Shown: positions 3,001-56,713 of the stretch, piece by piece
Layout: the number at the start of each line of letters is the position of its first letter
Position numbering within the stretch: position 1 is the stretch's first letter
Origin: Eukaryota sp. TZLM1-RC
Lineage: Eukaryota > Protista > Metamonada: BaSk clade
Direction of reading: 5' to 3'
NCBI GenBank assembly: GCA_040285825.1
Contig: JAUPSS010000014.1
Span: 66,337 to 130,336, forward strand
Length of the DNA stretch: 64,000 bases
Position numbers and translations under genes: made by a program
The notes under the pieces: model-generated
Told to the model about the DNA's origin: nothing
The model's input: only the letters and a program-made list of their open reading frames with translations
Databases searched by the model: none

Positions 3001-6000
3001 TCTAGTACATAAAGACTACATGCAACTCATCTAATCATACCAATGACCATTCAACCAATCATACCAATGACTAATCAAATGACCATAGCACGGACTTTAA
3101 CACCACAATTGTTATATTAATTGTCCCAAAATGGACTTTAAAGATTTGACCAATGATTGTAATAAACAACCATTGGTCAATATACGAAACTAGGAACTTC
3201 ATATGAGCCTCAGTAAATCGTATCAAAACGATACTCTTACACTTACAGCAATTGTTTTTATTAGTTTACAACATTCAATTGTATACTTTTGATTTTTTTA
3301 CTTTTTTTACAATTTAATGTTTAAAAATTAATACACTCAATTAGTTCAAATATATACAAAAATCATTTGAAAATGTAATCCTGAGTTTGTACTGATCAAG
3401 TAACACATAGCCAACATTACTAACACACAATTTCACACAAAGTTTGATCACAAGTTGATCACATCTAGTACATAAAGACTACATGCAACTCATCTAATCA
3501 TACCAATGACCATTCAACCAATCATACCAATGACTAATCAAATGACCATAGCACGGACTTTAACACCACAATTGTTATATTAATTGTCCCAAAATGGACT
3601 TTAAAGATTTGACCAATGATTGTAATAAACAACCATTGGTCAATATACGAAACTAGGAACTTCATATGAGCCTCAGTAAATCGTATCAAAAACGATACTC
3701 TTACACTTACAGCAATTGTTTTATTAGTTTACAACATTCAATTGTATACTTTTGATTTTTACTTTTTACAATTTAATGTTTAAAAATTAATACACTCAAT
3801 TAATTCAAATATATACAAAATCATTTGAAAATGTAATCCTGAGTTTGTACTGATCAAGTAACACATAGCCAACATTACTAACACACAATTTCACACAAAG
3901 TTTGATCACAAGTTGATCACATCTAGTACATAAAGACTACATGCAACTCATCTAATCATACCAATGACCATTCAACCAATCATACCAATGACTAATCAAA
4001 TGACCATAGCACGGACTTTAACACCACAGTTGTTATATTAATTGTCCCAAAATGGACTTTAAAGATTTGACCAATGATTGTAATAAACAACCATTGGTCA
4101 ATATACGAAACTAGGAACTTCATATGAGCCTCAGTAAATCGTATCAAAAACGATACTCTTACACTTACAGCAATTGTTTTATTAGTTTACAACATTCAAT
4201 TGTATACTTTTTGATTTTTACTTTTTTACAATTTAATGTTTAAAAATTAATACACTCAATTAATTCAAATATATACAAAATCATTTGAAAATGTAATCCT
4301 GAGTTTGTACTGATCAAGTAACACATAGCCAACATTACTAACACACAATTTCACACAAAGTTTGATCACAAGTTGATCACATCTAGTACATAAAGACTAC
4401 ATGCAACTCATCTAATCATACCAATGACCATTCAACCAATCATACCAATGACTAATCAAATGACCATAGCACGGACTTTAACACCACAATTGTTATATTA
4501 ATTGTCCCAAATGGACTTTAAAGATTTGACCAATGATTGTAATAAACAACCATTGGTCAATATACGAAACTAGGAACTTCATATGAGCCTCAGTAAATCG
4601 TATCAAAACGATACTCTTACACTTACAGCAATTGTTTTATTAGTTTACAACATTCAATTGTATACTTTTGATTTTTACTTTTTACAATTTAATGTTTAAA
4701 AATTAATACACTCAATTAATTCAAATATATACAAAATCATTTGAAAATGTAATCATGAGTTTGTACTGATCAAGTAACACATAGCCAACATTACTAACAC
4801 ACAATTTCACACAAAGTTTGATCACAAGTTGATCACATCTAGTACATAAAGACTACATGCAACTCATCTAATCATACCAATGACCATTCAACCAATCATA
4901 CCAATGACTAATCAAATGACCATAGCACGGACTTTAACACCACAATTGTTATATTAATTGTCCCAAAATGGACTTTTAAAGATTTGACCAATGATTGTAA
5001 TAAACAACCATTGGTCAATATACGAAATTAGGAACTTCATATGAGCCTCAGTAAATCGTATCAAAAACGATACTCTTACACTTACAGCAATTGTTTTATT
5101 AGTTTACAACATTCAATTGTATACTTTTGATTTTTACTTTTTACAATTTAATGTTTAAAAATTAATACACTCAATTAATTCAAATATATACAAAATCATT
5201 TGAAAATGTAATCATGAGTTTGTACTGATCAAGTAACACATAGCCAACATTACTCACACACAATTTCACACAAAGTTTGATCACAAGTTGATCACATCTA
5301 GTACATAAAGACTACATGCAACTCATCTAATCATACCAATGACCATTCAACCAATCATACCAATGACTACTCAAATGACCATAGCACGGACTGTAACACC
5401 ACAATTGTTATAATAATTGTCCCAAAATGGACTTTAAAGATTTGACCAACGATTGTAATAAACAACCATTGGTCAATATACGAAACTAGGAACTTCATAT
5501 GAGCCTCAGTAAATCGTATCAAAAACGATACGCTTACACTTACAGCAATTGTTTTATTAATTTTCAACATTCAATTGTATACTTTTTGATTTTTTACTAT
5601 TTTTACAATTTAATGTTTAAAAATTAATAAACTCAATTAATTCAAATATATACAAAATCAATTGAAAATGTAATCATGAGTTTGTACTGATCAAGTAACA
5701 CATAGCCAACATTACTAACACACAATTTCACACAAAGTTTGATCACAAGTTGATCACATCTAGTACATAAAGACTACATGCAACTCATCTAATCATACCA
5801 ATGACCATTCAACCAATCATACCAATGACTACTCAAGTGATCATAGCACGGACTTTAACACCACAATTGTTATATTAATTGTCCCAAAATGGACTTTAAA
5901 GATTTGACCAATGATTGTAATAAACAACCATTGGTCAATATACGAAACTAGGAACTTCATATGAGCCTCAGTAAATCGTATCAAAAACGATACTCTTACA

Positions 6001-7079: not shown

Positions 7080-7900
7080 AGTTTCTTCTTAATTTTCAAT
7101 AAAAGTAAATCGTACCACTACAAAATCAATTTTTGTTGATTTAATTTATTTGCCACATTCTATGGGTGGATTAGGGTTTTTTCATTTGAGTCATGTTGCT
7201 ATTTAGTTTCTTCAATTTCTGTATACTTTTCTGTACTTGATCTTGATTTATCCAATTTAATTCGAAGTGATCAGTTTAAAGTTTTGCTATCAGCTTTATC
7301 ACCATCTTTTGCTGGTTTTGACTCAATCTGGGACAAACGAATTAAAATTTTTCAGCGAAAAATCTCTCCTTTATTTTATAAAAAAGAATTCAATCTTGTC
7401 AAGAAATAATTATCAGAATGTGAAGGACTACAATTTATTTCAAATTGTGACAGTCAATCATCTTGCTTTTTTTTGAGAATTTTACCTATTTCTCAAAATT
7501 TCACGTTCTCAGATAGTTGCTTCAAATACCTAATAAATTTGAGATTGCTTTAAGGATAACAATTTGTGAAATGTCCATTGTTTGGTTATGGAAACTTAGA
7601 CTTAGATCACTCGTTTCAATGTAGAAAAGTCTCAAAGATGGTTACACAAAGACATGACGAAGTAAATAATTTTATTTACGAATTAAATAATTATGAATCT
7701 GAAAAGGAATTTAAATTTGGTTTACATAAGTACTTACGTGTTGATAGCTTTCAACAATCTACAAAAAGTGCTTTTGAAGTTACCATAGTTGCAAGTTATA
7801 GCAATAATTGGAATGGTGTTTCCCAATATTTATTCAGATAAAATCTCAAAATAATCAATTTTAAAAGATTTAAATTTAATTAACCAAATTGTACATTTGG
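7080..7900 (+). mobile_element. Decayed RLE-type non-LTR retrotransposon 3' fragment (family distinct from the CRE-like copies)
   Basis: ORF 7566-7841 has a degenerate Zn-knuckle (C..LDHSFQC), then RHD, E, R-x-D and EVTI motifs of a restriction-like endonuclease. An upstream GGLG motif lies at ~7165. Confidence 0.6.
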
Positions 7901-15184: not shown

Positions 15185-15705
15185 GATTCCTTTGGTAAAA
15201 GAAGGGCAGATTTAGTAGCTCCAAGGATCGATGGTGTTCTCAACGTTGTGGATGTTGTCTCAGTCGATGTCTGCAAAAATACTGCTGCTCGTTTGGTGTA
15301 TTCCGCTGATTCGCCGCTATTCAACGCAGAAAAAAAGAATATAACAAAATATGAAGCTCCATTGGCACAATAAGGTAGAGTCGAACATGTGAAATATCAG
15401 TTTGTGCCGTTTGCAATTTCTCTTTTTGGCAATATTGGACCTTCAGGATTACACTTTTGGAAAATTTCAAAAAAAATTTTACTAATAAGACCTCGTAAAA
15501 ATGAATACCACTTTCTGGTTAAATAGAATTGCTTGTTGCATTTTCAAGTCTATTCCAACAATGACTTCTAAAGCTCTTTAGCTATTGGTGTAGAAAATGA
15601 ACGAAATGTTGTGAGTAGGTTTAGTAGTTGCGATGTTTGTTTGGAAGAAATTGAATATTAGATAGAATTTTAGTTCAATAAAAATACAGTTTACAAAAAA
15701 AATAA
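15185..15705 (+). mobile_element. CRE-like RLE non-LTR retrotransposon, 5'-truncated 3' end
   Basis: Closely similar to 29715-30245 (RRADLVAP..VVDVVS..KYQFVPFAISLFG); ends in an A-rich tail. Confidence 0.85.
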
Positions 15706-28715: not shown

Positions 28716-28959
28716 TCATCATCATTGAGAAATCAGAGGTGTTAAAGAAACAACAGTCTCAACCCAAAGTTATGAACCCACTCATCACAGTCTAAAGGCT
28801 GTTGGAAATGGTGCTGAAGGTGCTGGTATACCTATGAGTCCGATGCAACAACCTGATCTCAATTCATTATCACCAGTAGCGAAAGCGAAAGTTGAAGAAC
28901 AATGTATAGTTTTGAAGTAACTTAAGAAATCAAGCTGTTGTCTATTTAGGTTGGTTCTT

Positions 28960-29165
28960 AGGAGAAAGGCCAAGAGCGAATGTGGTTAGCGTACTATTGT
29001 TAGTTAGGAACGACACAATTGTAGGTGTAAGGGAGTCAGAAATGTTGTTTCCGCTCACGTTGAGGGAAGTAAGGACACAGGACAAGACAGGATGGTAGAG
29101 GTACCAAGAACACGAAGGAAGTTGTGAATGTTGTCCTGTCAAGAGTCATTGTTAGGTTGAGTGGT
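28960..29165 (-). pseudogene. RI-like leucine-rich-repeat fragment
   Basis: LTSLNVSGNNISDSLTPTIVSFLTNNSTLTTFALG in ORF 28942-29142; no complete gene is visible. Confidence 0.4.
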
Positions 29166-29169
29166 TTCT

Positions 29170-30245
29170 ATTTTAAGATTGAAGAATTGACAACAGGAAA
29201 TTGAAACTCTTTCACCCAATATTTGGACTAAATGTTTCCCCTCTGATATTGTGGAACTTCCTTCAAGAAGCTTGCTCTCCTTACCACTGACTTTTGCAAA
29301 ATTGCAGAAAAATTTTTTGAAAGTTTTAGTAAACTTGGATTGTATTGTACGTCTTAGCTTGGCTAAGGAAAAAAATCCCGTTTTTGCAAACTTTTTGATT
29401 GATCTTGAAGACAGTTGTTCAAGTTGCCTAATCTCCCAAATTCCCAACATTTATGGCCTTCTACTTAATGATCACCAATGGACCACTGCAATGAGAATGA
29501 GATGTTTTCTATGGCCTTGTTCATTACCAAATGATTTAATTTGTCGCTGCAAGAGTGTTGTTACGCTTTCCCATATTTTAAACTGTAAGTATTTTATAAC
29601 TTATCGCTCAATTGTTCATGACTCAGTTCGTGATTAATTATATGCCATGTGCAAAAGTTTCAATATAGAGGCATTTATTGAGCCACTAGTACGTAAGCTG
29701 TCTTCAGATCAAACTGATGATTCCTTTAGTAAAAGAAGGGCAGATTTAGTAGCTCCAGGGATCGATGGTGTTCTCAATGTTGTAGATGTTGTCTCAGTTG
29801 ATGTTTGCAAAAATTATGCTGCTCGTTTAGTGTATTCCGCTGATTCGCCGTTATCTAACGCCGAAAAAAACAAGATAAAAAATATGAAGAACGATTGGCT
29901 CAGGTAGGTAGAGTGGAACATGTGAAATATCAGTTTGTGCCATTTGCAATTTCTCTTTTTGGCAATATTGGACCTTCAGGGTTGCATTTTTTTGAAAACT
30001 TCAAAAAAGTGTTATTGAATAGGTCTAGTAAAACAATGAATTCCACTTTCTGGTTAAATAGAATTGTGTTTTGCATTTTCAAGTCTATTCCAACAATGAT
30101 ATCCAAGGCGCTTTTAGCTATTGGTGTAGAATATGAACGTAATGCTGTGAGTAGGTTTAGTAGTAGTGACGCTTGTTTGGAGGATATTGAATTCTGGATG
30201 GTAATTGTTATCTCAATAAATATTCCAGTTTTTTTAAAAAAAGGA
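29170..30245 (+). mobile_element. CRE-like RLE non-LTR retrotransposon, 5'-truncated
   Basis: CRC..HILNC..RSIVHD, EP, RRADLV, VDVVS and KY motifs across ORFs 29251-30257; A-rich 3' end. Confidence 0.88.
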
Positions 30246-30486
30246 TTGACAAGTTGATCACATTATGAAAATATACTTTACGAACTCATTGAAACAACAC
30301 GTTCTCTTGATTGATTTGCTACTGTTAACCTTTTCAAGAAAGAAAATAGTTGCGGCAGCTTAAATATCACATATTATAGTGTTTAATTATCATTTTGCTC
30401 AGGGTTTGTAGATGTTAGAAGTTGTGAAAAAATCAAATTTTTATTGTTGACTGTCTGATCTTTTCTCGACTGACATATTCACCCCA

Positions 30487-32337
30487 ATGGCAAATCCAGA
30501 GTTGCCACGTCGAGGGCGTGTACTCCCCTGGGAGGTTAACCGTCGTGAGCAACCAATAAACGACAGCAAGACGACAGTTCCAGCAAGTGCTGCTCACTTC
30601 TTCTCTACTGCAGCTCTTGTTTCAATGGAAAGACAGTTTCGCTATATTCGAACTGTCACTGTGCTTACTGCCCGGTTAGCACAGCTGTTCGTCCTGCAAT
30701 ATCCGGAAATGGCTTTCTGGTTATATCAACAACAGTTTTGGTATCAATGCCAAGACTTTGTAATGGTACCTCATCCGACTGTGAGACGCCCATTCGAGAA
30801 TCATATGGAAGTGTACCGCAAACTCTATGATGTCTCTTTCCGACCTGTCTGGCCGTTTCCTCCTATTGGCTTTCAGAAGGGAACCGACAACTGCCTCTCT
30901 GACATTAGAAGCTTTCGCGCACTGCAAATGGCGAACAGCTTTTGTCAAATACTTACTGATGGCCCTGTCTCCTGGAAGCTGAACTTCTTCCGGACAATGG
31001 CTACCTTCTTTGAGTGCCCTTGCCCAAAGAAATATGCTTCATTAGTGGTGAACACGACTGCAGCCACTATTCCTGTCTCTTTGCGCGCATGGTATGATGA
31101 AGGTCCCCATGAGTACATAATGGACCTATTTATTCAGCAGGTTGCCGACCCTCATCGTTTTGACGCTATGTTGATGCTGGACAATGTTGATCTCAATCCA
31201 GACAACATCACCTTCTTATTCACTGCTGGGCTAAATATTTTATCCTTTCTGGAAAATATTGCATCTGACACGATGCGAAGAAATGCAGTGCCCCCTCCCC
31301 CAGTTATTCTCCTGGCTTTATCTCTTTTAGTCAAAAACTGGAAAAGCATTTTCTCTCTTTTAATGCCAACCACTGTCTGCTGAAAGATCCGTTGACCTTT
31401 TTCAGAAAAAAGAAGTATCTGACTTACACAATCAGTTCAGATGCTGTTTCAATCCGCTTCATTTTTTCCTTTGCCCCGAAAAAAAATAAGAATCGCCGGA
31501 CAGTCAGAGAATTGGCAACCATCATAGCCAGTGGGGAACTCGATATACCTGCAAAGAGTCGAAAGCGACACTCTAGACTTCAACAACAGGTTCGTCCTTG
31601 GCAACGTCGAAGAACTGACGACGCCTATGAGCCTCCGCCAGTTGATCCAATTGAATATTCATTTTGATAACAATGTTGATCATCAACTTTCGGGCCTTGT
31701 TCTGAATCCAAAGGCAAGGAAGATCATTCACCCACCGGTCCTGACCCATGCATCACCAAATTGCTATTTTGCTAAGAATTTACACAAATATCTTAATGAA
31801 ATAGCAATGCCTTTGATGTGGGTACCGACACAGGAAGAAATCAGCAATCCCGACTTCCGTCCAAGAACTATACTAGACCAACTGCTGATAAATGGAGATC
31901 GCCGAGCCCTGTGTCGCAACAAGTTTGATTTCTTTATAAGAAGGCAAAAAAGAATAATGGGATTAATTGAAAAAATTAAACTAATGGCTAATGGAAGAGA
32001 AACCATAATTTGGTTTGGTAGTGGAGGTGATGGGCCATCAAGACAAGCTGTGAAAACCCCAAGGAAGCGCTTTTTGAAGGAGATTCAGAAACATTTTACA
32101 TATATGAAGCCTAATGGAGATGAATTCTACACATCTGCCAAAACGAATTGCTGTAAGGTATTCAATCAAAAGTTGTATCACGATGATGGGAGGGTGCACA
32201 ATGATAAGTTTGTATGCCCTCAATGTCAGACACTCTGGTCGAGGGACATCTCAGCTTCCAGAAACCAACTGGAGATTGTCATAAGTGAACACTACTACAA
32301 TGAAAGACCTGAGGCGTTCCGGAGACCCCGTAGATAA
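30487..32337 (+). pseudogene. Fanzor (TnpB-derived RNA-guided RuvC nuclease), family B copy 1; one gene split over three frames
   Basis: C-terminus IIWFGSGG..NGDEFYTSAKTNCC..CPQCQTLWSRDISASRN..RPEAFRR gives the RuvC-II Glu, Zn ribbon and RuvC-III Asp. A WED-like YTISSDAVSIRFIF is in the middle frame. Frame breaks at ~31360 and ~31663; collinear homology to 52833-54655. Confidence 0.85.
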
Positions 32338-32339
32338 GT

Positions 32340-32497
32340 GTTTTTCAATGTATTACGTACCTGTACGCGTATTGTGATGTTGCTGCTTTAACTATCATTT
32401 GATCGTAATATCATATTGTGATGGATCTAAAGTATGCTTAACGTCTATCAAGGTTGCATGAACTGGTCAAAAGCCAGAAGTGCATTTTGATAGAAAT
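32340..32497 (+). ncRNA. Candidate Fanzor omega-RNA scaffold
   Basis: Three consecutive stem-loops immediately after the Fanzor stop; the strongest is TCTATCAA..TGCAT..CTGG/CCAG..GTGCA..TTGATAGA (32444-32494). TCAATGTATT..TATTGT is shared with the 3' flank of copy 2. Confidence 0.5.
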
Positions 32498-32558
32498 TCA
32501 CAGTAAATCAAACTTTCACAATTTAGCAATCACATCTGAAGCCACTTGCATTGCTTAA

Positions 32559-33803
32559 ATGAATGCAGTCGCAGAGTCTCTACTTGAGCACCTCAATGAT
32601 CCACTGCCATCTCTGTGGAAATTTCATCCACCTTCTTTGCTGTCTCAAGCATCGTTTGTTGTTCAACAACTGATTTCATCTTCAAATTCATATCATCAAG
32701 TATTGGCGGTTAAAATTGCTATTCTCTGTCAATCCCTAGTTGAACTTCCTCCATCCATTGATCCAATTACTGCTGCAGTTTATCATCTCTCCCATAGCTC
32801 TCCTGAAAGGGCATTAATAGCTCTTCCCCCATCTGAATGTCCCAAAGTTCTGTTTCTCAAATCAATCTCCTTTGCGCTTCTCAATAACCACTCAAATGCC
32901 CTTCATCACTCTTTACCTCTCCTCTCCTCGTCTCCTTCTCCCTCCTGTTATGCTCTTGTCTCTCTTCTTCTTTCCACACCCACTTCCTCACTTGATCTTC
33001 TCTCTCCTTCATATTCTCAATCCATACCCATCATTCAGAAGGGTATTTCCCTCTACCCAGATGATGTAATCCTCCACGTGATAGCTGCCCTTACTTGGTC
33101 AAGAATTGGATCACCATCCAAAGTCTCTTACCATTTACACACTCTTATTTCATCTCTTCAGAAGCTTTCTCCTGGTTCTCCTCCTTTTTCCATTTCCTTT
33201 TCCTCACACCCTTCACTTCCTTATATAAACGACATCTCTGTTACCCTTCCATCTCTGCCTTCTCCTCTTCAATCCACCATAGCCTTGATATTGACAGTTG
33301 CTGCTATTTGTTTTACTTATCTTCATCAATACCAAGATGCAGCGGTATGTGCTCAATCAGCTGGTACTTTGATTCCCGGATTTGCTCCTGCTTTGTTGCT
33401 GTCGGCTAGAGTACTTGCAAGTGAAGAAATCAACGAAGAATTAAGTTCTTTGGATGCCCTGTATGGTGTTGGTGTCTTGGATTGTGAAAATTTAGAAGTT
33501 GCACTTTATTTGTTGAAAATTTGGTTTGAAGGATTGAGAGAAGTTAAAGAAGCAGATTTAATTTATTTGGAAAACGAATTAGCTTTTATTATAAATAATT
33601 TGAAGAATTGTAAATCAAAAAGCTTTTGGAGAATTCTTTCACCAGGATTACTTGGGGAATGCTATGAGTTAATGGCACGTGTCACTGAGTTGTCTGGTGA
33701 CAAGAAGAGATCAGAAGAGTACAAGCAATTATCAGTAGAGGTGTTTCTTAATACCCCAATAATTAGTTATGAAATTATTGATTTTTTACATTTAATTAAA
33801 TGA
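32559..33803 (+). CDS. Hypothetical helical (TPR-like) protein
   Basis: Intact 414-aa ORF with Ala/Leu helical patterns; no recognisable family. Confidence 0.65.
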   Translation: MNAVAESLLEHLNDPLPSLWKFHPPSLLSQASFVVQQLISSSNSYHQVLAVKIAILCQSLVELPPSIDPITAAVYHLSHSSPERALIALPPSECPKVLFLKSISFALLNNHSNALHHSLPLLSSSPSPSCYALVSLLLSTPTSSLDLLSPSYSQSIPIIQKGISLYPDDVILHVIAALTWSRIGSPSKVSYHLHTLISSLQKLSPGSPPFSISFSSHPSLPYINDISVTLPSLPSPLQSTIALILTVAAICFTYLHQYQDAAVCAQSAGTLIPGFAPALLLSARVLASEEINEELSSLDALYGVGVLDCENLEVALYLLKIWFEGLREVKEADLIYLENELAFIINNLKNCKSKSFWRILSPGLLGECYELMARVTELSGDKKRSEEYKQLSVEVFLNTPIISYEIIDFLHLIK

Positions 33804-50959: not shown

Positions 50960-52790
50960 GATAAATGTCAAAGATGTAAAGCAAGGAGATCCTTTAGGAT
51001 CTCTTTTGTTTTGTTTGGTCATTCGTCCAATTTTATTACAAATTCAAGAGATGTTTCCTTCACTAAAGATGATTGCATATATGGATGATGTTGTTCTTAA
51101 AGGTGAATTAAAGATTGTAAAAAAAGCAACTGTATGTTTCAAAGAACTATTTAGCAAAAGTGGCTTTCACTTAATTTACTGAAATGTGTTTTGTTATCGA
51201 ATTCTCCAGTTTCTGCAATAGTTGATAGTTGATGGTATTGAAATTCAAGCCAAATTGTATACATTCGATGCTATTAGTCATTTGGGTTCGTTTTTGAGAA
51301 ATAATGATGAAATTACCAAAAAATTGTTTGAAATGTTGAACTCAATTGCCGGCAAAATTAACCGAATGATGACTTTAGATATACAGAAACTCATCAAATT
51401 TACCATTATAAGACTATGTTTTAGTTCCAACTTCAATCATATATTTCAATCTACAAATCCTTTCATCACTAGGCTTTTGGCTCAGAAGTTTAATGAGTTA
51501 CGTGCAAAAGTTTTGTCACAATTACTAGGATGTAAAATGTTCCAAATTCCAGACCATGCTTATCTTAGTCCACATTATGGCGGTTTAGGGTGGACAAAGG
51601 CTTCTATTCTTACCTCGTGTGCTTTTGTTGGTGGATGCAGAAATGCCATCATTGAGTTATCCGAAAGATTTGCTGATTGGGAAGATTTATCAACGACAAC
51701 GCAAAGTTCCACTGTTTTTGCATTAAATGAAGAAATTTCAAAAATTGATGTAGAAAAATGGAGTCGATACTTTCCCCAATCACTCAATGGCAATATTCCA
51801 CAAAAGAATCTTTTAAATTTAAAATTCACTCTTCGAACATTATAGAAACGATTGACTGGAACGTATGAAAACGATCGTTATAAAAATATACGCAGCTTGG
51901 CTTTTTTAAATCAAGGTCTTCACTCATTGTTATTGGAAAAGGGTGTTTGTGAAAACCAGTCATCAGATTCTTCACTGTTTATAACCATTGTACGACGAAG
52001 ATTTGCACTGTGTGCTACTAATGAAGCGTTTGTAACAAAAATGAGATTATATTTGAATATCCCCATTAATCAATTATTATCAAATGAAAAATGTATTTGT
52101 TCGAATTCACCTCAACTCATTTTGCGCCATGCCCTGAATTGTTCTAAATTGATAACTTATCGTTCTTCATTACATGATGCTGTTAGAGACACTGTTTTCA
52201 ATATGGCACAAACTGCAAGGATATCGTGTATCAAAGAGCCTCTGCTGAAGGAAAACACTTTCTCTGAATAATTTTAGTTCTGATGATAGAGGTGATGTAT
52301 ACTTCGATTGGATTGATAATTCTGAAGCTATTGTTGATTTTGTCTCATGTAATGTTGCAAATGATACTTTGGTTCACAGAAGAAAACTTAATCCTGTGAG
52401 TGCTCTTGATTTTGAAGCAAAAGAACAACATAGAAAATATGATAAAGATATTGAAGAGGCTAATTCTGATAGAAATACACAGCTGGTTTTTATTGCTTTC
52501 CCATTTTCGATAAACGGAAGATTATCAGATGAAGCAGAAACTTTTTTGAACGACTTCCAAAAAATGGTTCAAGAAAAATCAATGAAAAAATTTGATATTT
52601 TTTTATGGCGTTCTCGGATTCAATTAGCCATTATTAATAGATTACCTCGGTTTTTCAATCGAATAAGAGAAGCTTTAGCTAGGCAGCAAGCAGATCAAGA
52701 TTTTGTAGGGGCAATCTTGGTTCAATGATAGTCGTCCCATTAGATATGAATTTATTTTATTAAATGTCCATGTTCAGTAAATATACTTTA
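50960..52790 (+). mobile_element. CRE-like RLE non-LTR retrotransposon (RT C-half plus RLE), decayed
   Basis: VKQGDPLG.LLFCL, AYMDD, GGLG, CIC..HALNC..LHD and RGD motifs. The 3' part matches 17875-18096. Confidence 0.9.
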
Positions 52791-52832
52791 TAAATATCAC
52801 CAACACTGATGTAAACTTCTCAGCACCGAGGG

Positions 52833-54655
52833 TTAGTGTACAATAAACATTTTGGAAATACATTGATAAAAAGAGCTACTACTGTGTTTTGCAATCTCCA
52901 GCTGATTTGTAGAGTCTGAGATGTCCCTAGACCAGTTGGTCTGACACAGAGGGCGATCGAACTTAGCGTTATTTACCCTTCTGTCATCATGATATATCTT
53001 TCTATGAAAGACCTTACAGCAATTCACTTTTGCTGAGGTTATAAACTCGTCCCTCACTTTGTTGTTTTTAAAGTCTTTTCGGATTTGTTTGAGAAATTTT
53101 TTCCTAAAGGATTTCACAGCTTGACGACATGGACCACCGCCGCCATTTCCGAACAGGATTATAGTGTTTTTTTCTTCAGACAAGCGTTTAATGTTGTTAA
53201 TAAAACTAGTTAGTCTTTTTTGTTATTGTATGAAAAAATCAAATTTATTTCTTCTAAGTCTGTTTCTTCCACCACCCTGCATGTTTCCACACATGATTGA
53301 AGATTATTCAAAAGATTTCCTCAAATTCATCAACATAAGGTAAACTTACTTCAATCAGATACTCTTGGAACTCTGAGCGGAATAAGTATTAGAAATTGCT
53401 TGAGTGAGATGAGGAGAATGATTTGATTTTCGTTCTTTTGGTTTTAGCATCAAGCCAAAACACTCAAAAATATGTGCAAAATTTCGGAAACAATCAGTAG
53501 TCCAACCACAAAGATTGCTGTGGTCGGGATTAATGGCTACAAAAAGCAATTTTTTATCAGGATCTGGTTAGTTGGGCTGTTCATTCACTAATAACCGTAG
53601 TCTCTGCTGTGTATTTCCTTTTCTATGGACATTATATTTTCTTTTCCTTACATAATTATGAAAATCATAATTTCCAGAGACACGTCTCGACTCAACTTCC
53701 ACTTTAATTTGCCGATTATATGTTTTTTTGCCTATTGGGTCAACACAAACCGCAAAAAATCACCATTTGAAAAAATCGTATAGTTAATAAACTTAGATTG
53801 ATTAAAAAACCGATAAGTTTTGTTCAGCACGCTCATTGGTTTTATTTAGCTTTGTGAAATAAGCTTCGGCTTCTTTATATCAAACTGCAGAAACATGGAG
53901 ACCAACTGGATAGAGGTGTGAGAGAGTGTCTTTTCATAACCTCAGGGTAGTTATCTTCTAGAAGAGATAAAATATTCAATCCTGACTGAAAAATTGTAGC
54001 TGCAGTTTCTATATTTATGGTAAATCGTTCATTTCTGATTGGGGTTTCCAACACATTTTGCCCCCACCTATAAAGGCATTTGTTGTCTTATTTAAACAGT
54101 GGGTCAGAATATGTTGGTGCAGACCTCTGATACCATTGTGAAATGGTATCATCCGGCTGAAGATTTTGAGGTACGCATTCGGCGTAATTTTTGGGACTAG
54201 GGCAATTCAGCCTTTGAACACAGCTTTTGAAAAAATTGTGTATATAAACAACAAGGCGGTCAACCAACAGCTGACGCAACGCTTCCCTCAGTTAAATGGC
54301 TCGATTGCCAAGCAGACTGGAATGGCACCAGATCCTACCACCGTCGGCTGACGTGGTTTCAGTCAGTGGGCGCCAAGGCCAAAAGTGTTGAACAAAATGT
54401 TGCAGCGCTTGAAAAACCAGAGGATGGTTCTCGAAAGAGCTTCTTTGTTTGGGTTCTCTTTCACAAACAAAGTCGAAACAGAGGCTCCAGAACTGGCTTT
54501 GAGTAGGCCAGCATAGAGTGTTTTGGGTATTGGAGTACAAAGAGTTTTGAGAAATGAGTACCGTGAGCCCCAATACTAGCGAGAACTGGAAATTGGTGTT
54601 CCAAAATGATTGAAAATTTGTTTTCTAAAATTGAAGATTTGTTGAAATCAATCAA
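52833..54655 (-). pseudogene. Fanzor family B copy 2, heavily decayed
   Basis: IILFGNGGGGPCRQAVK..RDEFITSAKVNCC..PLCQTNWSRDISDSTNQLEI, RuvC-I-like LLFVAINPDHSNL and YTIFSNGDFLRF. N-terminal KLFVLQYP, SSFENH and CPSPKNYA match the 30487 ORF. Confidence 0.85.
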
Positions 54656-56713
54656 TCTTTTAGTTGTCGAATCAAAGTGAAGTTAGTTACAAGTGTTTAT
54701 AAATGATATAGCCAATAGAAGCTTCAAAACTCCCAGGACAATCTGACTGGTCTCGTGCTATGTTGATAGCGATCCAAATATTTGATGAAGGAAAGACCCA
54801 GATTACTCCTGAGCTCATTTCATCTCTCCCGACTCATGTCAGAGAAGAAATTGATAGGGACATAAAACAGCCACTTTTAAGTATTGACCCAGAACTGATA
54901 AAACGACTAAGCAAGCATCATAAAAAAGACAAAAAAAAAAGACTTTGACAACAGGGTCAGAAACACAGGTAACTTCCCCAATCGGAAACAAATCAATGCA
55001 ATCGATCATATTCAATCAATTGGCGATTTCGGAAACCCAGTCAACAACTCCCCAACAGATCAACAATTCTTACTTAATCCTCTACAAATCCACAAACACA
55101 GCTCTGATATCAACGGTATTTTTGGTATAAATTTTACTGTTAGTGAAAATTACATCAGATCCTAGCGTTCTCCATTTCTAAGATTGGAGATTTTAATAGA
55201 GAACATAAAAAGGATTGCAACTATTGATTTGGCAGCGTTTTGTTCGGTTATAACAGAAGATTCGGCTAACAAATGCAATATGTCAATTAATAGAGATGAT
55301 ACGATTGAGTTCTTATTAGCCAATAACGTATCAAGTAAATAGCTAGAAACGAGGAGTGCAAATGGTATTTTGTCGTTCAACGTAGGAAACATTGCGCACC
55401 AGGTACATTATAGACATAATCTTCCCATAATCCCGGGTTCGAACAATTTATTAATAGGGATAGATATGTTGAAAACACTTGGGTTTCAGACATGATGGTC
55501 TTTTCATTAGATTAGACAAAGAACACTTCGTTAAATGCAGAATCAGAATTCGACTCAAGAATCGCTCAACATTCGATTGGAACCTTAGATAACCAATCAT
55601 CGAGTCCTTCCGATTTTGAGGAGCAATTAACTAGATTTGGTTGTGAGATAAAATTAGATTATGATAATAATAAATTAAAATGAATGAGTCTACTAGGAAT
55701 TTTCAGCGATGTTTTTAGCGAAACTCCAAACAGAAAATGATTCGATTGTAATCCTCTAACAATCTCCTTCAGAAATGAAAATGCTATAGTAAACAAACCT
55801 GCTAGACGGTTTAATCCCAGCAAAATGGAAATAGCAAACAAAATATTTGATGAAATAATTGAAATGGGCTATGCAGTTGAATCTAATTATAAATTCAGCT
55901 CTCCTATCGTTTTAGTTATATATCCTGACGGCAAGAAACCCAGGCTAACTGGAACCTTTAGTGGTAAAGATGGTGTTTATGCCCACACGATTTCAGTAGA
56001 GCCTAATCTACCTAGGATTAGTGATATTTTAGAATTTTTGGGTAGAGCAGATTATATTGCCACGCTTGATTTACCAAAAGCTTTCTGGCAAATGACCGTA
56101 GCTGAGAAGGACATTGAGAAAACATCAGTCTCAATCCCTGGAACATCTATTATGTTTAAAAGAGCTTGCTTTGATTGAAGTACATTTCAGCAGTATTTCA
56201 AAACGTAATGATGGAAATTTTCCAAATTGATGGCGTTTTTATATGTCTTTTTTGTTAGATGCCCAAAACAGTTCCTCTTCGTGTTTAACTACTCAGATTC
56301 CTCAAAATTATGGTCTTCTTTTAAATGATACCGAATTTTCTTGTACAATGCGCCTTCGTTGTTTTATTTGGCCTAATAACGTGCCTCATAATTTGATTCG
56401 TAAATGTGGATCAAAGATTTCTCCAAATCATTTATTCAATTGTAAACATTTTATTACTTTTCGATCAAAAGTTCATGATGCAGTAAGAGATCAACTCCAT
56501 TGTATGTCAAAACCACATACAATTGTTTGCTATTTAGAACCATTACTTTCCCGTTCGGTTGATGAAGATACTTTGAATTCGTTTGGTCGAAATAGAGATG
56601 ATTTAATGCTTGAAGGTCTTGAAGGTACTACCATTATTACAGATGTGAGATCCACTGATGTCTGCAATGATTCCTTCATTCCAATGGCTCAATCAAAATG
56701 TAAAGACTCCTTA

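Follow-up and report, generated by a model that had tools for sequence, protein, structure and literature searches.

A probable Fanzor1-encoding mobile element in the metamonad Skoliomonas litria, decayed in one genomic window and intact elsewhere in the genome

The window analysed here is a stretch of 64,000 nucleotides (nt) from Skoliomonas litria TZLM1-RC (contig JAUPSS010000014.1, positions 66,337 to 130,336). Skoliomonas is a haloalkaliphilic anaerobic metamonad that includes the strains TZLM1-RC, TZLM3-RCL and GEM-RC1 (PMC11603281). At positions 30487-32337 of its forward strand the window contains a broken gene of the Fanzor family, eukaryotic RNA-guided nucleases whose wide distribution among eukaryotes and programmability are established. 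The locus is very probably a pseudogenised copy of a multi-copy mobile element whose only gene encodes a divergent Fanzor1 with the domain order WED-REC-RuvC-TNB.

Three consecutive open reading frames (ORFs) are listed at the locus, at 30487-31383 (ORF1, frame 1), 31392-31667 (ORF2, frame 0) and 31531-32337 (ORF3, frame 1). A first-pass annotation had read them as one gene, and the reading holds: the pieces are collinear with an intact paralogue of 637 amino acids, and the breaks are deletions. The gene of this paralogue, P0124, is one uninterrupted, intron-free ORF of 1914 nt and 637 codons at another locus of the genome (L001:6001-7914). In a global DNA alignment, the window copy differs from it by 55 substitutions and exactly three indels, all of them on the forward strand and in the coding region. 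A 3-nt deletion at 30892 removes Trp136, a 1-nt deletion at ~31296 (codon 271) moves ORF1 into the frame of ORF2, and a 59-nt deletion at ~31667 removes codons 395-414. ORF3 is back in the frame of ORF1 because the 1-nt and 59-nt deletions amount to 60 nt. The segment lost with the 59-nt deletion is CAIDPNHKNLCGYSIGSRID, the RuvC-I strand with the catalytic Asp398; the window copy is therefore a pseudogene, has no function and cannot act as a nuclease. Introns were considered as the cause of the ORF breaks and rejected, as a GT...AG pair at 31375-31405 fails to restore the frame and the intact paralogues are intron-free.

The gene can be divided along its lesions. Codons 1-270 (30487-31295) correspond to a disordered N-terminus, the first WED strand and the helical REC, as seen from the DNA alignment to L001 and the structure model. 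Codons 271-394 (31296-31666), placed in a shifted frame by the 1-nt deletion relative to L001 and uninterrupted in intact copies, cover the end of REC, WED strands (YLTYTISSDAVSIRF) and a basic disordered linker. Codons 415-637 (31667-32337) follow the 59-nt deletion and are delimited by the DNA alignment, conserved columns and a Pfam match. This last part retains WFGSGG, Glu567 in GDEF, the zinc-finger Cys residues, Arg607-Asp608 and RP..F.R; all the motifs quoted in the first-pass annotation are present in the ORFs. In intact subfamily-A copies, to which the window copy belongs, a perfect 16-nt palindrome with arms at L001:7160-7175 and 7219-7234 flanks the RuvC-I codons. Its site corresponds to window ~31640-31667, and the second arm is gone with the 59-nt deletion. 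The deletion may have been hairpin-mediated, the second arm being inside the deleted segment.

Intact copies elsewhere in the genome, which had been anticipated, were found: P0124 and P0121 (637 amino acids each) and P0123 (632). All protein-level work was done on such natural intact paralogues, with P0124 standing for the window gene, and not on joined window ORFs. Subfamily A forms a 90%-identity cluster of 28 annotated models, and among 15 of the 28 at least these three are full length. Sister clusters B and C in the same genome contain 18 and 17 models, the full-length ones being 589-663 amino acids long, so that TZLM1-RC carries at least 63 annotated models over three 90%-identity clusters. 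Further families of 589-605 amino acids occur in TZLM3-RCL and GEM-RC1. Identity between the subfamilies is 32-49%, and the loci are found on Mb-scale contigs amid eukaryotic genes. At the DNA level, element copies are 92-98% identical and have a common 3' boundary.

Some of the public gene models need care. At L005, L007, L010 and L012 they are not collinear in translation; the coding frame of L005 switches after 266 codons, and frameshifts appear to have been bridged by annotating very short introns. Some annotated 'full-length' Fanzor proteins of Skoliomonas may thus be pseudogenes. Two Fanzor loci of TZLM3-RCL have ~360 bp of upstream DNA in common (L008:2581-2935 and L009:2511-2864, 89% identity), and their proteins are each 32-38% identical to P0124. 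Either a 5' module common to both loci or an unrelated repeat could explain the upstream DNA.

The intact proteins are predicted to adopt the Fanzor1 fold. The AlphaFold2 model of P0124, built from a 41-sequence alignment, has a mean predicted local distance difference test score (pLDDT) of 83.6 and a predicted template-modelling score of 0.78, with the N-terminal helical region mostly above 90. In a Foldseek search of the PDB with this model, the top seven matches are all Fanzor1: SpuFz (E = 7.5e-12, template-modelling score 0.55-0.58), followed by PpFz and GtFz. Cas12g, Cas12f, TnpB and Fanzor2 lie far behind, ApmFz2 having an E-value of 0.083. Using VIA-align, the model superposes on SpuFz with Z 20.5 and a root-mean-square deviation (rmsd) of 4.8 over 509 of 590 residues, pairing residues 25-635 with chain residues 18-633. 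This agrees with the WED-REC-RuvC-TNB modelling check that had been proposed for the gene. Full-length matches to SpuFz, GtFz and PpFz range from Z 18.1 to 20.5 (GtFz 19.4, PpFz 18.6), while the best non-Fanzor match is a Cas12 at Z 14.3 and ISDra2 TnpB reaches 10.8. No Fanzor2 is among the best 50 VIA-align matches listed for the model.

The N-terminal half, including REC, had been described as unrecognised, a view that the structural comparison overturns. For this comparison, residues 26-392 were modelled as a separate chain (pLDDT 78.7), and the model was run against 48,161 representative chains with no Foldseek prefiltering. The best match is the N-lobe of GtFz1, with Z 14.4 and an rmsd of 3.6 over 269 residues (chain 2-393). 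The next ten matches (ranks 2-11) are N-lobes too, from TnpB, Fanzor2, TranC or Cas12, with Z from 8.2 to 5.8; TnpB aligns over 147 residues (Z 8.2) and ApmFz2 over 146 (Z 7.0). Because the GtFz1 N-lobe tops this comparison when the half is folded alone, the modelled N-terminal half is best described as a Fanzor1 WED-REC lobe of very divergent sequence and not a new REC. At ~370 residues the predicted lobe is Fanzor1-sized, and its basic linker (about residues 330-390) is modelled as disordered, with pLDDT 53-67. The predicted models, whole protein and N-lobe, thus match the bilobed WED-REC-RuvC-TNB arrangement with the enlarged REC seen in solved Fanzor1 structures. The features of Fanzor2, namely TnpB size, a short REC and an IS607-type link, were not found, and no serine recombinase is present in any examined neighbourhood of the family loci.

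By sequence comparison, the catalytic triad of the intact protein consists of Asp398, Glu567 and Asp608, accompanied by a four-Cys zinc finger (C576/C577...C598/C601). Over 41 sequences, D398, E567, C577, C598, C601, R607, D608 and N614 are at least 90% conserved. Bao and Jurka described the Fanzor motif D-X(125,275)-[TS]-[TS]-X-X-[C4 zinc finger]-X(5,50)-RD (PMC3627910). P0124 carries it, with D398, T570-S571 171 residues on, C576/C577...C598/C601, and R607-D608 five residues after the last Cys. The family as a whole has the motif; the window copy lacks it, its first Asp being deleted. In Fanzors, the canonical RuvC-II Glu is replaced by Gly or Pro, and an alternative conserved Glu lies ~45 residues downstream (Jiang et al. 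2023, PMC10530073). In a 19-sequence family alignment G532 of WFGSGG is invariant and E567 follows 35 residues downstream. With positions equated by alignment, this arrangement appears consistent with the rearranged Fanzor active site.

Sequence profiles connect the family to characterised Fanzors through an intermediate group. ORF3 of the window matches Pfam PF07282 (Cas12f1-like_TNB) with E = 6.8e-6; at 26.6 bits it narrowly exceeds the cut-off of 26.3. In an exhaustive phmmer search, the same ORF weakly matched unnamed metagenomic proteins (E between 1e-7 and 1e-3) that carry PF07282 and are 530-735 amino acids long; 17 of these were used to build a bridge profile. The bridge profile matches SpuFz1 over nearly its whole length (E = 1.9e-36), as well as PpFz1 (3.3e-29) and GtFz1 (5.3e-28); against Fanzor2 it aligns over only ~65 C-terminal residues (2.1e-13). 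In hhalign, the Skoliomonas profile in turn aligns to the bridge profile (probability 99.8%, E = 5.9e-29); the 507 aligned columns are collinear and extend from the first WED strand as far as the C-terminus. The alignment pairs the first WED strands, the SnGvS strand with TDGV, AIDPN with DPG, RRNKFDFFIRRQKR with RLKFD..IR.QK and WFG with FG. Towards the C-terminus it pairs GDEF.TS with DE..TS, the zinc-finger Cys residues, SRDISASRN with NRD.NAA.NI, and RP..F.R; the bridge-group counterparts of G532 and E567 are G517 and E553. As judged from these alignments, the family is truly divergent, yet homologous to Fanzor1 over its whole length. The initial assignment of the gene to the TnpB-like Fanzor family is upheld by PF07282, the fold matches and the bridge profile.

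At close range the family is restricted to its host genus. Protein searches with ORF1 and with a longer paralogue gave matches only in TZLM1-RC, TZLM3-RCL and GEM-RC1, and every strong family match comes from these three strains. No close relatives of the N-terminal ORF were found outside Skoliomonas in a single-sequence search or in a 19-sequence profile search. The earlier description of a lineage-specific family therefore stands for strong matches and does not extend to remote ones, as the bridge profile links it to SpuFz1, PpFz1 and GtFz1. The family is a divergent lineage within a known enzyme family, not a new kind of enzyme.

In the window, the subfamily-A element extends beyond the gene on both sides. 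Its distal 5' non-coding part lies at 28727-29193 on the forward strand (93% identity to L001:5260-5728) and is contiguous with the gene in other copies. The proximal 5' leader (30240-30486, forward strand) abuts the start codon and falls within a 92% match between L001:5716-8085 and window 30240-32508. Because L001:5260-5728 and L001:5716-8085 match these two window segments, the intervening 29194-30239 is a secondary insertion, not found at this point in L001, L002 or L004. It represents the 3' end of a 5'-truncated non-LTR (long terminal repeat) retroelement on the forward strand; its own 3' end is marked by an A-run, and a target-site duplication (TSD) of ~12 bp (AAG[A/G]ATTGACAA) brackets it. 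The flanks of the insertion read AAGAATTGACAA and AAGGATTGACAA, and in L001 coordinates the two blast segments have 13 bp in common. Related retroelement sequence is present at window 15185-15692 and 51023-52783 and at L001:1218-2963. The conserved 5' non-coding part also contains an annotated ORF of 94 codons (L002:5174-5458, corresponding to window ~28727-28900), with no Pfam match recorded.

Downstream of the gene, a conserved 3' flank (32338-32503, forward strand) is a candidate for an omegaRNA scaffold or for the element's right end. We compared the ends of eight subfamily-A copies. In all eight, similarity breaks off at one and the same base, ...GAAATTCACAG, which lies 166 nt beyond the stop codon (window 32503). 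The 5' ends differ in every copy, falling at L001-equivalent positions 5185, 5205, 5260, 5368, 5440 and 5779. The pattern of variable 5' and fixed 3' ends, seen in L001-L004, L011, L012 and the window copy at 28727, resembles one-ended or 5'-truncating replication. Across six subfamilies and three strains, the 3' flank closes 72-166 nt past the stop with a terminal block, ATGCAT-N6-9-GAAA-NN-C-N-CAG. That the block is kept across proteins only 32-49% identical points to a functional cis element. It is a candidate for the 3' end of an omegaRNA scaffold located at the right end, with the guide starting in the adjoining flank; in the window, such a guide, if any, would start at 32504.

Several observations weigh against the interpretation as a Fanzor1 element. 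Conserved RNA secondary structure could not be demonstrated in the 3' flank, and there is no Rfam match in 32100-32600. The neighbourhoods contain no transposase partner. Terminal inverted repeats are absent from the ends of L001:5150-8150, and none of six copies of the Fanzor element has a TSD. At the protein level, most family members score under the PF07282 cut-off: P0034 reaches 28.1 bits and other members 21-25, just below it. The Skoliomonas-only profile reaches no solved Fanzor in a PDB search; it gives a marginal match to LaTranC over the zinc-finger and RuvC-III stretch (E = 0.047).

A terminal stem between CACAG and an upstream YUGUGA was tried as a structural element of the flank and rejected. 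Its duplex energy was significant only in subfamily B (0/300 shuffles), it is not present in intact subfamily-A copies, an end-anchored helix test gave p 0.07-0.98, and RNAalifold returned no consensus.

Among other explanations, the most durable is that the 3' flank serves only as a cis end for rolling-circle (Helitron2-like or IS91-like) or other transposition machinery, with the Fanzor gene as passive cargo. We regard this as unlikely, although a real contender. It would account for seven subfamily-A copies with seven different 5' ends, a single 3' end and no TSD, a pattern that is also seen in the Chlamydomonas CRe Fanzor1/Helitron2 elements (Bao and Jurka, PMC3627910), and it would fit the lack of demonstrable RNA structure. 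The element end, CACAG, differs from the CTRR of Helitron1. Moreover, every characterised TnpB or Fanzor has its guide RNA scaffold at the right end, which makes the two roles compatible. The Helitron2-like pattern of fixed 3' and variable 5' ends is thus kept as either a rival or a complement to the omegaRNA reading.

It is improbable that the family is instead a bacterial TnpB, or a Fanzor2, recently acquired by a bacterivorous protist. Skoliomonas does feed on bacteria, and TnpB-like leaves have been reported in bacterivores by Saito et al.; the strongest direct PDB match of the family-only profile, LaTranC, is prokaryotic. The structural comparisons nevertheless favour Fanzor1, both for the N-lobe, which fits GtFz1 over far more residues than TnpB, and for the whole protein, where SpuFz scores well above ISDra2 TnpB. 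The bridge profile likewise spans Fanzor1 at full length and covers only the C-terminal end of Fanzor2. Deep subfamilies in three strains argue for long residence, and the position of the loci amid eukaryotic genes on large eukaryotic contigs speaks against recent acquisition as well.

Substitution patterns distinguish the propagating lineage of Fanzor1 genes from the window copy. The ratio of nonsynonymous to synonymous substitution rates (dN/dS, Nei-Gojobori) is 0.27-0.31 among the three intact subfamily-A copies L001-L003, and climbs to 0.44-0.52 in most comparisons involving the window copy, the pair with L004 giving 0.36; the counts are small (16-36 differences). The direction fits constraint in the propagating lineage and release in the window copy. 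It is hardly credible that splicing joins the three ORFs as exons into a functional gene, or that the breaks are homopolymer assembly errors in an intact copy: the 1-nt difference does sit in a C-rich run and the gene models of the assembly span frameshifts at other copies with tiny introns, but the paralogues are uninterrupted and intron-free, dN/dS is raised in most window-copy pairs, the leader is broken by a retroelement, and neither splicing nor a homopolymer error can supply the Asp missing with the 59-nt coding deletion.

The window contains a second, decayed member of the same Fanzor1 family at 52790-54706 on the minus strand. A decayed paralogue matching the three ORFs in order had been noted here, and tblastn within the window confirms the order on the minus strand, although the copy belongs to a different subfamily, B (83% DNA identity to L005:2869-4953). 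Residues 50-270 of ORF1 align at 54588-53914 (28% identity), residues 3-32 of ORF2 at 53809-53720 (37%) and residues 55-250 of ORF3 at 53456-52890 (51%). Relative to L005, this copy has 10 indels that shift the frame; a 105-nt deletion spans its start codon, another 67 nt are deleted at the end of the ORF, and its RuvC-I motif reads AINPD, not AIDPN. It is an older wreck from a sister subfamily of the 30487-32337 copy, and both Fanzor copies in the window are pseudogenes. A tblastn search with 13 family and bridge proteins found no family copies in the window beyond these two loci. Copies of subfamilies A and B also occur ~10 kb apart at L004/L005 (contig JAUPSS010000004.1, 6.71-6.73 Mb); the window parallels this arrangement, with the two subfamilies 20 kb apart in a transposon-rich stretch.

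A mechanism can be proposed by analogy with characterised Fanzor1 and TnpB. Intact copies would bind RNA from the 3' end of the gene together with the 72-166-nt flank ending in GAAAnnCnCAG. The adjoining flank would serve as the guide, and matching DNA would be cut next to a target-adjacent motif. Cutting would help the element to persist or spread. The window copy would have dropped out of this cycle through its 1-nt frameshift, the 59-nt deletion of the RuvC-I strand and the retroelement that landed in its leader. It is possible, and we suggest it tentatively, that intact copies such as P0124 are active intron-free Fanzor1 nucleases with a short 3' omegaRNA scaffold ending in GAAAUUCACAG, spreading in a 3'-anchored, 5'-truncating manner without TSD.

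If this is the case, the family would add a compact, very divergent member (~13% identity to SpuFz1) to the editing toolbox and would be one piece of evidence that Fanzor1 spread across eukaryotes early or by way of viruses. Fanzors being widespread, one more family leaves the overall picture as it is. What is new here is the host lineage, a free-living soda-lake metamonad, and the degree of divergence; in the literature searchable here, no paper mentions Fanzor together with Metamonada or Skoliomonas. The family comprises several old subfamilies, its intact genes lack introns and are under purifying selection, and its conserved 3' end is short, all of which makes it a tractable candidate for collections of divergent compact RNA-guided nucleases. 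It is also useful for studying how Fanzor elements move.

Among characterised systems, SpuFz1 of Spizellomyces punctatus (PDB 8GKH, 9CEU-9CEZ) is the end-to-end match, with ~640 residues in the order WED-REC-RuvC-zinc finger. The two differ in host, a chytrid fungus versus a metamonad, and in sequence, with 13% identity over the structural alignment, and a family-only hidden Markov model misses SpuFz1. GtFz1 of Guillardia theta (PDB 9CER) provides the best match for the N-terminal half along with a strong whole-protein match; identity is 12-13% over the structural alignments, and the Skoliomonas proteins differ in having the basic disordered linker. Language-model clustering places giant-virus (Nucleocytoviricota) Fanzor1-like proteins of 620-800 amino acids with PF07282 and DUF8286 nearest (score 0.98), a lead only, with no alignment or E-value behind it; DUF8286 was not matched in the Pfam scan of the Skoliomonas proteins.

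In genomic behaviour, a parallel is offered by CRe-1/2/3 of Chlamydomonas reinhardtii, non-autonomous Helitron2 elements (Bao and Jurka 2013, PMC3627910) that are likewise multi-copy and carry a solo Fanzor1; they too are truncated at the 5' side, over-represented at the 3' side and bounded by a defined 3' end. The CRe genes are split into 5-10 exons, in contrast to the intron-free Skoliomonas gene, and no Helitron termini, asymmetric terminal inverted repeats or TSDs were recognised in the Skoliomonas element. ISDra2 TnpB (PDB 8H1J, 8EXA) shares the core of WED with a small REC, RuvC and zinc finger, and its N-lobe matches with Z 8.2. It is shorter (~400 amino acids), has a REC of about half the size and retains the canonical RuvC-II Glu, where the Skoliomonas family has Gly and places Glu567 35 residues downstream.

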